A DNA stretch of 61,757 nt, filler included, from Choristocarpus tenellus KU-1152 (GCA_964200185.2; 12 parts of 12 records of this genome joined end to end with filler, not necessarily neighbours in it); one strand, 5' to 3'; counted from the first letter of the whole stretch, positions 56,107 through 61,757 are shown. Numbers and translations: made by a program. Notes: generated by a model not told the origin, from the letters alone.

Positions 56107-56239
56107 CATCCACCAGACACAGNNNNNNNNNNNNNNNNNNNNNNNNNNNNNNNNNNNNNNNNNNNNTTAATTAATTAANNNNNNNNNNNNNNNNNNNNNN
56201 NNNNNNNNNNNNNNNNNNNNNNACTCCGACCGGTAGCTA

Positions 56240-58130
56240 CGTATCTTCTGTTCCACTATCTAAATGTACAACTCGTGGAATGCAAAGTGCATGAACATGA
56301 GAGTCGGACACCAAGGAATGATACACTGATGCAGAAATCTGCACAACCTGCAACTCTACCCTTACTTCTACAGAAAACCGGAACGACCGAAGCCCTATTT
56401 CAATTGCTGGGCAGACTCGAAATTGCATTCGTTCCCCTTCTCCCACCACTCTTCAAGCTTAGGATATACCTCGACAAGAAGGTGCCATAGATTTAGGCAT
56501 GTGGAGTACCTGTCGTTCCAAGGCTCGGGCTTCACGAGGCTCAATAAGATAGCCTTCTTCGCCTGGAGCGCTTCCACATGCTCGGGACACAACGTATTGC
56601 CTGGTTCCCTCCACGATCGCTGAGTTTAACCTGTGTGGGCTCGTGGACGTAGCATTCATCCCCGAAAATAAGAGAAGCGGCCCCTTTACCGGCCTTGATG
56701 AGCCTGAACCCGTGATCGAAAATGACTTGGGTGAGGATTTGCGTCTGCACTCGATACTGTGCAGAAGCAGGTTTCGTTGCCGATCATAGGAGCTCGGTAA
56801 CGCATGCCTCCATGAAGGCTTCGGTGATCCCCACGTCAGATGCATCTCCGGAGTTGGCCGCGTCCTGTGTGACGCAATCCAGTACTGTCTAGGTGACATA
56901 GACTTCCGAAGTACTGATGCCGTGTCACAGACGGCTGTGAAAAGGAGGGTAGCTGCAAAGATAATGGCATTCCTCAAAGAAGCTTGGGAGGACACACATA
57001 TGGAAGCCGGCGTGGATAGACTCACCGACCAAACCTCCGTCCAATTCTCCAATGCGATCGCCACCCTTGTCTACATATGCGCGGGAGAAGGTGAGATTCT
57101 CACGACTCCTTCAAAAGGAAACGATTCGTGAACGATTGTGAAGCATCGCGTACCTTTCTTCACATATATCCATATTAATTCCGCGTCGGTGGTCCAACAT
57201 ACACCCCATCCCTCTATTCCCCTCACTATGTTCCACCAGAGACAAAAGAACTGGAGGAGATCCTTCTCGGTGTGTGGAGAGAGCACAAGAAGCATGACGG
57301 GTCGAGTGTAAGCGCGATACATCCGTATCTACATTAGTACATCCAATACCCCATCACTAATGGTCCAACAACACCGTAGTAACCCCTGCCTTCCAATACT
57401 GAGCTTGAATTGACGTTTCATATATTGGTAATGTCATCGACCTTATGACATACGCCGTTAACCCACAAACCAACTCCCACTCCCACGTTCTTCTGTCCTG
57501 ATCATATTAACTTATTCTCCACATACCCAACGCGCACCTGACCAGGACAAATTCGACTTCAGAGCAGTTCACATGTTCACTGTGCTGTGGTATGCTAATC
57601 CGGACGCTGCCATCGAATCCCTCAAGAACAGCGGGGGATTCACGCACACCTGGTTGCACTTGGTGACCAGTGTCGCTATACGCGCGCGACAATCAGGGTC
57701 CTCTTCCGTTTCCCGGATGTAGGGGTGGGACCTGTCGCAACTGAAGTCGTGCCTATACTCCAGGATAGCGACAACCCAAGAAACCATCCAATGGAATATG
57801 TCTAGGATGTTTGGCACGTGCGATCGGCTGGCTGCAACGCTCTCTCCTGTGGAGATTGATTCAGTCTCTTCTCCCGGTTGCAATGTGGATATATCTTCCA
57901 CATGAAGCTCTTGTGGTTAGCCATCTGGAGGTTTGCTCCTACTTCCGAGGCCCATCGCGTTGTCACATGGGCCGCGAGGTTGATACCCCAAGGGACGTTG
58001 TCCTCCTTGGCGACGCACTCGATCGCCCTCAACAGCGTAATCGGACTATGTGATTAATGATGACGGGATCTGCACAGAGTGCAGGGTTCGCGTCCATGCG
58101 TGGGTTATGCAAAGGTGATATGAAAAGGGC
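56240..58130 (-). mobile_element. Degenerate hAT-like transposase
   Basis: CxxH (LCITHAW) followed by HVTTRWAS (the hAT RW motif), then a long decayed frame with TGA/TAG stops. Confidence 0.5.
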
Positions 58131-58302
58131 GTAGTGATGCCCGTGGACACGAGGATGACGTAAACGCTTTCCTCGAAGGCCGATATTTACTAAGAATTTG
58201 GAACTGTTATCCCGGTCGATATGGGAGAAATATGAATATGAATACGCACCAATATCGGACGCACTCTAGAAGGATTTACGCGCCGACCAAGGTAACATAT
58301 AG

Positions 58303-58670
58303 CGAGGGCAATCATGCACAGGTTTGTACTTGACATAGGGCAGGAAATAATGAATGCATTTCATGTCTTCTGTCGAAGGGTAGATGCCATCAATATCCAA
58401 AGCGCGGCAAGACTGTTGGGGTGTGTGTGTGTCGATTTGAAATAGTAATCCTGAGGAGGAAAATATTACGTCGAATCTCAAAAGTGAAAGATGAAGATGA
58501 AAGATTTTAGACGCTGACCCGGGCTGGATGTCGGGAGGGCAATCATTCGCAGGTTTGTGCTTGATAGTAATGAATGAATTTGATGTGTTCTGTGGAACGC
58601 TAAAGGCCATCAAATTCCAAAGCGCGGCAATACGGTTTGGGGGTGTGTATGTACATTTCCGATTTGAATC
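58303..58670. repeat. Diverged ~230-bp tandem duplication
   Basis: GAGGGCAATCAT..CAGGTTTGT.CTTGA and TCCAAAGCGCGGCAA each occur twice about 220-230 bp apart. Confidence 0.7.
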
Positions 58671-59021
58671 TTATCGGAAATATTCCAATGGTATCGGAGC
58701 CCTTACACACGCGTATCGAAGGTGTTACCACGTCATCCTGGACCGACGGATGTTGTGGTGCGTGAAATTGCATCGTGGAATCTTGCTTCTATTTCGGATC
58801 AGTTGTCTGATTACTCCCAACAAGAGTGACAGCAACATATGTTCCAATATCCGAAAAAGGTTCGGTCGAATTCGCTGTAGTCATTTTGTATTAGTGTTGC
58901 TGAATTTATTCTACGATGGCAATTTTGATCCGAGGTGAAATCTGAAAATGATGCATTTGGCTTAGTGTTGAAAATGTAGGTGACTTATTTTTGTCAGGGC
59001 TAGGGCTAGTGTCATGGGTGC

Positions 59022-59272
59022 TGGTCGAAATATCTTAATGGTAGGGCCACGTTCATTTTGCGACCGAATGAAAATGTTGCTTTCTTCCTGTCATTGTTGC
59101 CCTCATTATTGTTTGGATATGTACATGTCCTTTTTCCGAACACTCCTTTCCATAGTGTATATATTGTAAATCTCCAAAACATTTTGGAGTCAGTACGAAG
59201 TCCTTGAAAACCAGTGGTTAGCCAAGCCCCAAAGGACAGACAGGGAAAATGCAGTGCCCTCTAACATAGAGT
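59022..59272 (+). mobile_element. Old, diverged MITE family B copy
   Basis: GTCGAAATATCTTAATGGTAGGGCCACGTTCATT ... CTCCAAAACATTTTGGAG ... AGCCAAGCCCCAAAGGACA ... CCCTCTAACATA, colinear with the family B consensus. Confidence 0.65.
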
Positions 59273-59274
59273 AT

Positions 59275-61460
59275 CGAATAAAAAAATTGCTCGTATCACA
59301 ACCATTTACAGATGGCTTAGTCACTGTTGTAAAGGCAAATAAATGCAGGGCATCGAATCTGAAATGCTTGTATCACCACCATTGGCAGTAGAGTAGACTG
59401 TTGTAAGGATTACGAAGAAAGGGTACTGAATTTGAAAATGCTGGTGCTACCAGGATTGACAGATGTTGTGTACACGATTGGACATGCAAATAAATAAAGG
59501 GCATCGAACCTGAAAATGCTGGTATCACCATCATTGAAAAATGGTGTATACACAGTTGGAAACGTAAATAATTACAGGGCATCGAATCGAAAAATGCTGG
59601 AATCACCACCATTAACAGGTGGTGTGTAGACGGCTGTATGCATGCCACTATGCAGAGATTTATTAGTAGGGTATATACTTTTGCCAGCTTTATCAGGTAA
59701 ATGCAAACTATTAATATAGTCATCTATACTCATTTCAGCTCTAGCAAATACTTCCTGAAATTTTAGTTTAGACTGTAGTAATACATGATGGTCTTGCATG
59801 TGATGGATACCACTAACTACACCTCTGTCAGTTTTGATTAGTATACCGAAATCTTTCTGTATTGCTTTTGGCAAATCCTGGATAGGAGATTTCTTACTGA
59901 TAGCTTCACCTATTATATCAATTTCGCTATCAAAATAATCCGCACCTTTTCTGTGTAACTTTCTTACGTCTATAAAATGATCCGTTTCATGAAATATTGA
60001 TGCTTTTGGTAATATTCCATCAAACTGAGATATTTCATAAGGTAATTTACCATAGCGAGCATCAAGATAAACACCTTGGCAAGGATTACGAAGACAGGGT
60101 ACTGAATTTGAAAATGCTGGTGCTACCAGCATTGACAGGTGTTGTGTAGACAGTTGTCCAAGGAAACGCAAATAATTACGGGGCATCGTATCTAAAAATA
60201 CTGGAATCACCACCATTGACAAATGGTTGTGTACACCGTTGGAAATGCAAAAAAATACAGGGCATCGTATCTAAAAATGCAGGTATTGCCACCATTGATA
60301 GATGGTGTGTATACGGTTGGAAACGTAAATAATTTCGGGGCAACGAATCTAAAAATGCTAGTATCACCACCATTGACAGGTGGTGTGTACGCGGTTGGAA
60401 AAACTACTAATTACGGGGCATCAAATCTAAAAATGCAGGTTGTACCATGATTGACAGGTGGTGTGTACACGGTTGGAAACGCAAATAAATACAGGGCATC
60501 GAATCTAACAATGCAGGTATTACCACCATTGACTGGTGGTGTGTACACGGTTGGAAACGGGAAATAATACATGGCATCGAATTTTAAAATGCTGGTATCA
60601 CCACCATTGACAGGTGGTGTGTATACTGTTGGAAATGTAAGGAATTACAGGGCATCGAACCTAAAAATGCTGGTACTACAACCATTGACAGATGTGTATA
60701 AAAAATTGGAGACGTAAATAATTACGGGGCATCGAATGTAAAAATGCAGGTATCACCACCATTGACAGGTGGTACATACACGGCTGGACACACATATAAT
60801 TACAGGGCATTGAATCTAAAAATGTAGGTGTTACCAGGATTGACAAGTGGTGTGTATGCGGTTGGAAACGCAAATAATACGGGGCATCGAATCTAAAAAT
60901 GCTGGAATCACCACCATTAATAGGTGGTGTGTAAACGGTTGGAAACGCAAGTAAAGACGGGCCATCGAATCTAAAAATGCTGGTAACAACACCATTGACA
61001 GGTGGTGTGTACACGGCTGGAAACGCAAATTATCACGGGGCATCGAATCCAAAAATACTGGTATCACCACCATGGACAGGTGGTACGTACACGGCTGGAA
61101 ATACGAATAATTATGGAGCATCGAATCTATAAATTAAGGTGTTACCAGGATTGACAAGTGGTGTGTATGCGGTTGGAAACGCAAATAATACGGGGCATCG
61201 AATCGAAAAATGCTGGAATCACCGCCATTAACAGGTGGTATGTACATGGTTGGAAACGCAAGTAAAGACGGGGCATCAAATCTAAAAATGCTGGGAACAA
61301 CACCATTAACAGGTGGTGTGTACACGGCTGGAAACGCAAATTATCACGGGGCATCGAACCCAAAAATGCTGGTATCACCACCATGGACAGGTGGTACGTA
61401 CACGGCTGGAAAAGTAAATAATCACGGGGCATCGAATCTAATAATGCTGGTATCACTGTT
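59275..61460. repeat. 78-bp tandem satellite (~5 diverged units at 59275-59636, ~17-18 units at 60081-61460) with an internal hairpin and a 311-bp higher-order duplication
   Basis: Consensus GGGGCATCGAATCTAAAAATGCTGGTATCACCACCATTGACAGGTGGTGTGTACACGGTTGGAAACGCAAATAATTAC; ORFs starting 60831 and 61142 are offset by 311. Confidence 0.95.
59637..60080 (-). CDS. Fragment of a bacterial-type polymorphic toxin: HExxH motif plus AHH (HNH/EndoVII) nuclease domain, inserted in the satellite
   Basis: Stop-free 148 codons: IFHETDHFID ... QDHHVL...VFARAEMSIDDYINSLHLP....IYPTNKSLHSGMH, matching the AHH pattern xHH...IDxxxNxxxLP...HxGxH; AT-rich relative to its flanks. Confidence 0.6.
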
Positions 61461-61757
61461 AAAACATTGGCTACTCATTTGTTTCTTGTTGATATGATAC
61501 ACATACTACCAGCTTGTACTGACTGTTGATTGGTGCACTGCACTGATTGTTAGTGTTCATTTATTTATTGCGCATTCCAACTCATCATCATCACATCGAT
61601 GACAGTAGATTGAAGCATAGCATCAGTTGATATTCAGTTGATCCACATCACACAAAGGAACATCATAGCACACGTCATCCAAGTTACTTCGGAACTTGCA
61701 TCAAGTGCGTTCCACTGTTACCTTGTGTTCCTCTTTCTATTTTGTTGTTGTTGCCAT

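Follow-up and report, generated by a model that had tools for sequence, protein, structure and literature searches.

The window considered here is a stretch of 61,757 nucleotides in which the real genomic DNA analysed is a piece of 5.5 kb (56223-61757), and this report concerns an insert of apparently bacterial origin that interrupts a satellite array with a unit of 78 base pairs (bp) within that piece. The initial annotation had described such a satellite as being broken by unique, AT-rich DNA that is open on the minus strand, and both the array and the insert were found, the latter being unique DNA with a guanine-cytosine (GC) content of 33.8%. Its left edge is where it had been placed, whereas the right edge, given earlier as 60080, was moved to 60078 by the phase of the repeat unit and by BLAST against bacterial relatives, so that the insert measures about 442 bp (59637-60078, +/- 2 bp). 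The features of the region are as follows.

59275-59636, left part of the 78-bp satellite array, about 4.6 units, ending at unit phase 1
59637-60078, minus strand, insert, a putative internal fragment of a polymorphic-toxin gene of Rickettsiaceae type, recognised by Pfam AHH, by the homologues P0001 to P0009 and by DNA identity to bacterial contigs
60079-61456, right part of the 78-bp satellite array, resuming at unit phase 2
59572-60222, minus strand, 216-codon open reading frame (ORF) that spans the insert and extends into the repeat at either end

The array was called by Tandem Repeats Finder at 59433-59625 (2.3 copies) and at 60162-61456 (16.6 copies, 79% matches) with a higher-order period of 311 bp, which corresponds to four units, and on the left it reaches back to about 59275 through more diverged units. 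Its units differ from each other by about 20% and have a GC content of 40-43%, and that of the left flank is 48%. A small hairpin of the form CACCACC-N7-GGTGGTG was observed in every repeat unit, which upholds the description of the repeat as hairpin-bearing, although folding of the whole unit gave only a modest gain over shuffled sequence (z -1.3 to -2.4). The first unit to the right of the insert (60081-60166) is the same distinctive variant (AAGGATTACGAAG...GCTGGTGCTACCAG) as the unit at 59405-59490, which stands three positions to the left of the insert, and the two are 88% alike; an uninterrupted copy of the variant junction is located at 59391-59418. The variant unit beside the insert contains a palindrome with a 9-bp stem at 60113-60133 (z -4), and this palindrome, AATGCTGGT-GCT-ACCAGCATT, is perfect in the right-hand copy of the variant. 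The satellite is found at many sites of the genome, as the bins of the array reach a depth of 1400-1800.

The insert is predicted to encode a fragment of a nuclease domain of the AHH family (HNH/EndoVII), an incomplete domain in which the predicted catalytic motifs are present. The 216-codon ORF was found to match Pfam AHH (PF14412) with 28.4 bits against a gathering cut-off of 22.3 bits, and the insert alone reached 22.8 bits against the same cut-off. The match spans only positions 7-79 of the 111 positions of the profile and the domain is therefore incomplete, while the full-length relatives cover positions 12-107. The homology begins at 'QGVYLD...', about 23 residues ahead of the toxin module, where the related contig L001 has GQGVYLD, and the insert thus holds about 23 residues of the pre-toxin region together with the first two thirds of the AHH domain. 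All the relatives extend about 60 residues beyond the HSGMH motif, where the homology of the window stops. The motifs of the predicted domain are located as follows.

59785-59793, minus strand, DHH motif, the counterpart of the 'AHH' dyad of the family, kept in the relatives
59710-59712, minus strand, invariant Asn of the HNH-type core, kept in the relatives
59638-59652, minus strand, invariant HSGMH motif, right after which the homology to bacterial genes ends

In an alignment of 11 sequences, (D/N)HH, Asn, LPD and HSGMH were all observed to be invariant or nearly so. The A of 'AHH' is replaced by D or N throughout this subfamily, and in the insert the HH dyad is followed by a hydrophobic strand (DHHVLL) and occurs along with both the Asn and HSGMH. 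The AHH-type signature (xHH, N and HxGxH) that had been recognised earlier is therefore well founded, with its motifs kept in every relative and the Pfam score above the cut-off. No match was found in NCBIfam, and sequence searches of the PDB returned chance matches only (MEK1 and twinfilin, E 0.006 or worse) and no relative of known structure. When the full domain of contig L007 was modelled with AlphaFold2 on the 11-sequence alignment, the mean predicted local distance difference test (pLDDT) score was 58.5, with values below 50 in the catalytic stretch, and the model is too uncertain both for the assignment of a beta-beta-alpha-metal fold and for judging which elements of the structure the fragment has lost. 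A further motif that had been pointed out, an HExxH sequence (HETDH, 59977-59991), did not hold, since the relatives read NETDN or ETPEH at this position; as a metalloprotease site it was rejected as an unconserved chance match.

Relatives of the predicted fragment were obtained both by a word-based search of 5.8 billion proteins, which gave five, and by a profile search, which gave eight. All of them come from metagenomes or from a Logan assembly and most carry PF14412; the homologues are all found on bacterial contigs, as had been expected of the best matches. The protein identity is 70% to P0001 over 98% of the length of the fragment and 90% to P0002. The DNA is 92.7% identical to L003 over 287 bp, 91.1% identical to L004 and 93.5% identical to L002, and the identity to L001 is 76% over all of 59635-60078. 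The GC content of the related contigs is 32-38%, and the relatives with 91-93% DNA identity resemble the insert in having 32-34%. In the rest of the 5.5-kb piece, no other likeness to the related bacterial contigs was observed.

Modules of a C-terminal toxin and its antidote within larger polymorphic toxins are described from across rickettsial genomes (PMC11077975), and the predicted domain shares with these modules and with the AHH (PF14412) toxins the HH dyad, the Asn and the HxGxH motif. As in other polymorphic toxins, the domain forms the C-terminal tip of a giant protein in the bacterial relatives and is followed by a small conserved ORF. As an example, L007 (247-8837) encodes a protein of 2589 residues with a SecA_DEAD-like N-terminal part and with AHH in the last 200 residues (31 bits, profile positions 12-107), and a 273-codon ORF lies directly after this giant toxin gene. 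The toxin tip and a downstream ORF of about 250 residues without a Pfam family were observed to recur in L001, L002, L006 (33-2152), L008, L009 and L010. Since a toxin gene followed by such an ORF is the layout of polymorphic toxins, the downstream ORF of about 250-270 residues is probably an immunity gene, and we regard it as a candidate for this role on the grounds of gene order. The carrier of the subfamily has a SecA-like N-terminal part and not Rhs or haemagglutinin repeats. The layout of carrier, C-terminal toxin and immunity gene was not observed in the window, where the fragment is bordered by satellite DNA at both ends and where the carrier, the start codon, the partner ORF and the C-terminal third of the domain are absent. 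The fragment differs from the AHH toxins in that it covers only profile positions 7-79 of 111, has no carrier or immunity gene and belongs to a subfamily with D or N in place of A. Taken together, the relatives bring out a little-described AHH toxin subfamily with giant SecA-like carriers and a conserved partner ORF, which was found only in metagenomes.

Several of the related contigs carry mobile-element genes next to the toxin. L002 has the istA and istB genes of an IS21 element together with a resolvase, an IS701-like transposase cuts the toxin gene of L004, and L006 and L007 have a PD-(D/E)XK transposase, a ParA/VirC1-like gene and a DDE_Tnp_4 gene. In L006, the transposase that adjoins the toxin shares 95.7% identity with a transposase of Candidatus Megaira ('Megaera') polyxenophila, a member of the Rickettsiaceae, which is encoded on its plasmid pPCS201, and further matches are in Rickettsia, Cardinium and Wolbachia. 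The IS21 transposase of L002 is 59% identical to those of plasmids of a Rickettsia endosymbiont, with the next best match at 33%. The SecA-like part of the L007 protein has its best match in a 'SecA-like domain protein' encoded by a different Ca. Megaira plasmid, and its next matches are in a Rickettsia endosymbiont, Legionella and Ca. Bandiella. Because the mobile-element genes and the SecA-like part that accompany the homologous toxins are closest to plasmids of Ca. Megaira and Rickettsia, the donor was most probably a low-GC intracellular bacterium rich in insertion sequences (IS), a member of the Rickettsiaceae near Megaira, which agrees with the donor of Rickettsiales type that had been suggested. 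The toxin domain itself had no relative in profile scans of 185,579 representative bacterial and archaeal genomes and no match among the PLSDB plasmids by tblastn.

The nearest bacterial copies of the toxin were observed to be broken. In L004 (152-1461) the IS701-like transposase interrupts the gene after 'MSID', and L002 (1998-4672) holds a truncated copy with IS21 just upstream. L003 (1-1004) and L004 have in common a different, shortened upstream part.

The right end of the array is formed by another repeat, which is the last feature of the window.

61457-61757, very high-copy element, recognised by word depth, which cuts off the array at phase 49 of a unit

The cut lies within the unit at 61456, with ...GCTGGTATCAC on its left and TGTTAAAACATTGG... 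on its right. The word depth of the element is about 90,000 in run X1, compared with 15-25 for the single-copy parts, and it is therefore an element of several thousand copies (about 4000). This element, whose first bases are TG, may be the end of a long terminal repeat. A segment further to the left (56408-57147) has a depth of 1000-1900 in X1, which corresponds to about 50-100 copies. No Rfam match and no organelle signal were found. A satellite with higher-order structure that is cut by a high-copy element and has mid-copy repeats alongside points to a eukaryotic chromosome, and the recipient is very probably a eukaryotic nuclear genome. To our knowledge, such a repeat-rich setting is seen in no bacterial genome.

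The junctions of the insert were examined on contigs that Logan had assembled run by run for three runs (X1, X2 and X3), rather than on raw reads. Three of these contigs cross a junction.

59577-59968, X1 contig of 392 nucleotides (nt), 0 mismatches, depth 24, crossing the left junction
59998-60120, X1 contig of 123 nt, 1 mismatch, depth 40, crossing the right junction
59798-60120, X2 contig of 323 nt, 0 mismatches, depth 11, crossing the right junction

Contigs assembled separately in two samples thus span the junctions, the left one in X1 and the right one in both X1 and X2. The contigs of the insert have depths of 24 (X1) and 11 (X2), like those of the unique contigs nearby (14-23 in X1 and 9-13 in X2), and the insert is present at the copy number of its surroundings, which is single-copy depth. 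Position 60014 is C in X1 and X3 and A in the window and in X2, and therefore at least two sequence variants of this stretch of the insert are present in the samples, so that the insertion is carried by copies that differ in sequence. An empty-site allele, in which 59636 would be joined to 60079, was not found among the contig joints listed.

The 216-residue minus-strand ORF was found at 59572-60222 as described, and the 148 codons of the insert contain no stops or indels in DNA of 34% GC. In this sense the insert is intact, as had been stated, but the domain that it encodes lacks its C-terminal third. The capture had also been described as in frame with the flanking repeat, and any meaning of this is not supported. 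On each strand, only a single frame of the consensus unit is free of stops, the minus-strand one reading PCTHHLSMVVIPAFLDSMPRNYLRFQ, and another minus-strand frame is closed by a stop once in every unit. The part of the ORF upstream of the insert was observed to follow exactly the stop-free frame of the repeat, and the downstream part follows the one-stop frame as far as its first stop. ORFs of 100-117 codons are also present in regions of the array without the insert. Since the run-on follows the repeat's own open frames and since the insert of about 442 bp is no multiple of three, the continuation of the frame carries no information; it is a by-product of the open frames of the unit and no evidence of a gene. 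The sole start of the ORF is a TTG within the satellite.

When the flanks were aligned to the consensus unit, the left flank was found to end at unit phase 1 (59636) and the right flank to resume at phase 2 (60079), which coincides with the end of the bacterial homology at 60078. The array passes from phase 1 to phase 2 across the insert and is therefore continuous, with no unit sequence lost or duplicated. Neither a target-site duplication nor terminal (inverted) repeats were found around the insert, and the microhomology at its ends is at most 2 bp. Such a clean insertion is what would be expected if an extrachromosomal fragment had been captured bluntly through end joining, a mechanism that we infer from the form of the junctions. 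That the palindrome located 30 bp from the junction made the site fragile is speculation.

The age of the insertion was considered from its divergence. Over 96 codons, the insert differs from its nearest relative L003 by 12 synonymous and 10 non-synonymous changes, which gives a synonymous rate (dS) of 0.25, a non-synonymous rate (dN) of 0.044 and a ratio of 0.18; the dN/dS ratio against L001 is 0.16. Among the bacterial copies L002, L003 and L004, which are broken by IS elements, the ratio is about 0.56. A dN/dS of 0.18 means that purifying selection was acting while most of the divergence built up, which places this divergence in bacteria, ahead of the transfer. If the bacterial ratio is about 0.1, neutral change since the insertion would amount to a few per cent at most, with the true donor being unsampled. 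The array, whose units differ by about 20%, is therefore far older than the insertion. The low ratio and the absence of stops and indels point to a recent insertion, as had been suggested.

From these observations we consider it likely, with good though not full confidence, that the insert is a young, truncated fragment of a Rickettsiaceae AHH-toxin gene that was captured by end joining in a satellite and is a non-functional relic. A double-strand break would have occurred within the 78-bp satellite of a repeat-rich genome and would have been repaired by non-homologous end joining, and the repair would have taken in a stray piece of about 442 bp from an intracellular bacterium of the Rickettsiaceae related to Candidatus Megaira, presumably one resident in the host lineage. 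The captured piece would be from the 3' region of a giant polymorphic-toxin gene, comprising the end of the pre-toxin part and two thirds of the AHH domain. Lacking a carrier domain, its own start codon, an immunity gene and the C-terminal third of the domain, the fragment would since then have been a relic without function.

Some observations weigh against this explanation. The summed depth in X1 at 59923-60107 is about 120, around five times that of the rest of the insert, and the X1 contigs break at 59968/59998; further copies or variants of this segment, either nuclear or bacterial, may account for the high depth. The runs behind the junctions belong to one study and are possibly the source data of the assembly, and what crosses the junctions are contigs and not raw reads. 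The nuclear location is drawn only from the satellite, its higher-order repeat and the copy-number profile. The donor was assigned through the mobile-element genes beside the toxins, and such genes are themselves able to pass from one bacterium to another, while the toxin subfamily was found in no named genome. In addition, the dN/dS estimate is built on only 22 differences.

An assembly chimera or contamination, in which bacterial reads were misjoined to the host satellite, would agree with the bacterial sequence and the 34% GC of the insert and with the probable presence of bacteria in the samples, where Logan contigs reach 245 kb. Against this, contigs from the separate assemblies of runs from two samples cross the junctions with 0-1 mismatches at the single-copy depth of the host, the repeat and the bacterial gene have no common stretch long enough to merge paths of the assembly graph, and the exact continuity of the array phase is not expected from a random mis-join. 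The junctions are therefore taken as real and a chimeric assembly is very unlikely. A relic derived from a Rickettsiales-like bacterium that was never resident, and that reached the host as prey, during a transient or environmental infection or with a virus or plasmid as the vehicle, is unlikely, though it deserves some weight: no sign of such a symbiont was obtained in the host, and the relatives come from free metagenomes of several kinds. A resident bacterium would have had the best access to the germ line or nucleus, and the Rickettsiaceae are obligately intracellular, Megaira having been recorded in algae, in ciliates and in further aquatic hosts (PMC4324946, PMC11077975).

We also considered whether the fragment has a function or was taken up by a dedicated process. 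The frame of 216-232 codons, or an exon in it, could be expressed as a domesticated gene in which the truncated nuclease core has a role in the host, for example in defence or in an effect on the symbiont, and the 148 open codons in AT-rich DNA, the predicted catalytic motifs (DHH, N and HSGMH) and the low dN/dS are all in line with this. Divergence within bacteria ahead of the transfer would nevertheless be expected to yield a low dN/dS, the fragment lacks some 60 C-terminal residues present in all the relatives, the flanking 'coding' sequence is the open frame of the repeat, the only start is the TTG inside the satellite and the immunity gene is absent, so that domestication has a very low probability. 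The possibility that the 78-bp hairpin array, or a transposon carrying it, actively takes up foreign fragments had also been raised, and other arrays would then contain other inserts. The hairpins of the units, the strong palindrome in the unit beside the insert (z -4) and the occurrence of the satellite at many places in the genome would favour such a process, but only one insert was observed in about 21 units, no spacer-like periodicity, terminal inverted repeats or target duplication were found around it, and the contig joints in other arrays are repeat-to-repeat rearrangements and not foreign DNA. Fragile palindromic DNA together with end joining suffices without a dedicated mechanism, and active capture is thus highly improbable. 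It is just as doubtful that the satellite is a preferred landing site for symbiont DNA whose transcripts or small RNAs include the toxin fragment, or that the truncated HNH core is expressed as a host protein from the frame of the repeat; if the landing-site idea were true, the host would gain a sequence-specific handle on the toxin gene of a Megaira-like symbiont. The capture of a stray symbiont fragment by end joining is the explanation that we retain.

Nuclear inserts of Wolbachia in arthropods and nematodes and nuclear copies of mitochondrial and plastid DNA (NUMT and NUPT) are fragments of cytoplasmic genomes that entered chromosomes at breaks through end joining, with hardly any microhomology or none, and most of them are non-functional and decaying. 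Such transfers, and end-joining capture in fragile repeats, are well known. The fragment described here resembles these inserts in that it would have been captured by end joining and is a probable relic, and it differs from them in its donor, a Megaira-like member of the Rickettsiaceae, and in its target, a hairpin-bearing satellite. It would represent no new mechanism but a new example of the known transfer of DNA from symbiont to host.

The closest case is that of Volvox carteri, whose nuclear genome contains about 9 kb of gene-like DNA of rickettsial origin (PMC4324946). Both cases would involve DNA of Megaira-group Rickettsiaceae in a eukaryotic nuclear genome, and the Volvox strains that carry this DNA may lack the bacterium (PMC4324946). 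In contrast to the Volvox integration, which comprises four gene-like regions, the present one is a single internal toxin-gene fragment of 442 bp inside a satellite. Megaira-group rickettsiae inhabit green algae (PMC4324946) as well as ciliates and other aquatic hosts (PMC11077975), and an algal host would fit the host range of this group. The insert would be a dated and checkable footprint of contact between the host lineage and Megaira-like Rickettsiaceae that can be used as a presence/absence marker among strains. It also prompts the question of whether the symbiont is still present and offers a route to the toxin repertoire of the donor.

To the left of the array, eight ORFs gave no Pfam match, and for one of them a language-model search for look-alikes returned values below the useful range. 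The mid-copy segment at 56408-57147 is open over long stretches of both strands, shows GT..AG-like boundaries at 57100 and 57239 on the plus strand and has no Pfam match; it is probably a decayed transposon or a gene-family pseudogene. Furthermore, two direct copies of about 165 bp that are 73-81% alike were observed at 58270-58440 and 58501-58660 with a spacing of 220-231 bp, and they are either the product of a local duplication or a small repeat that is present twice.

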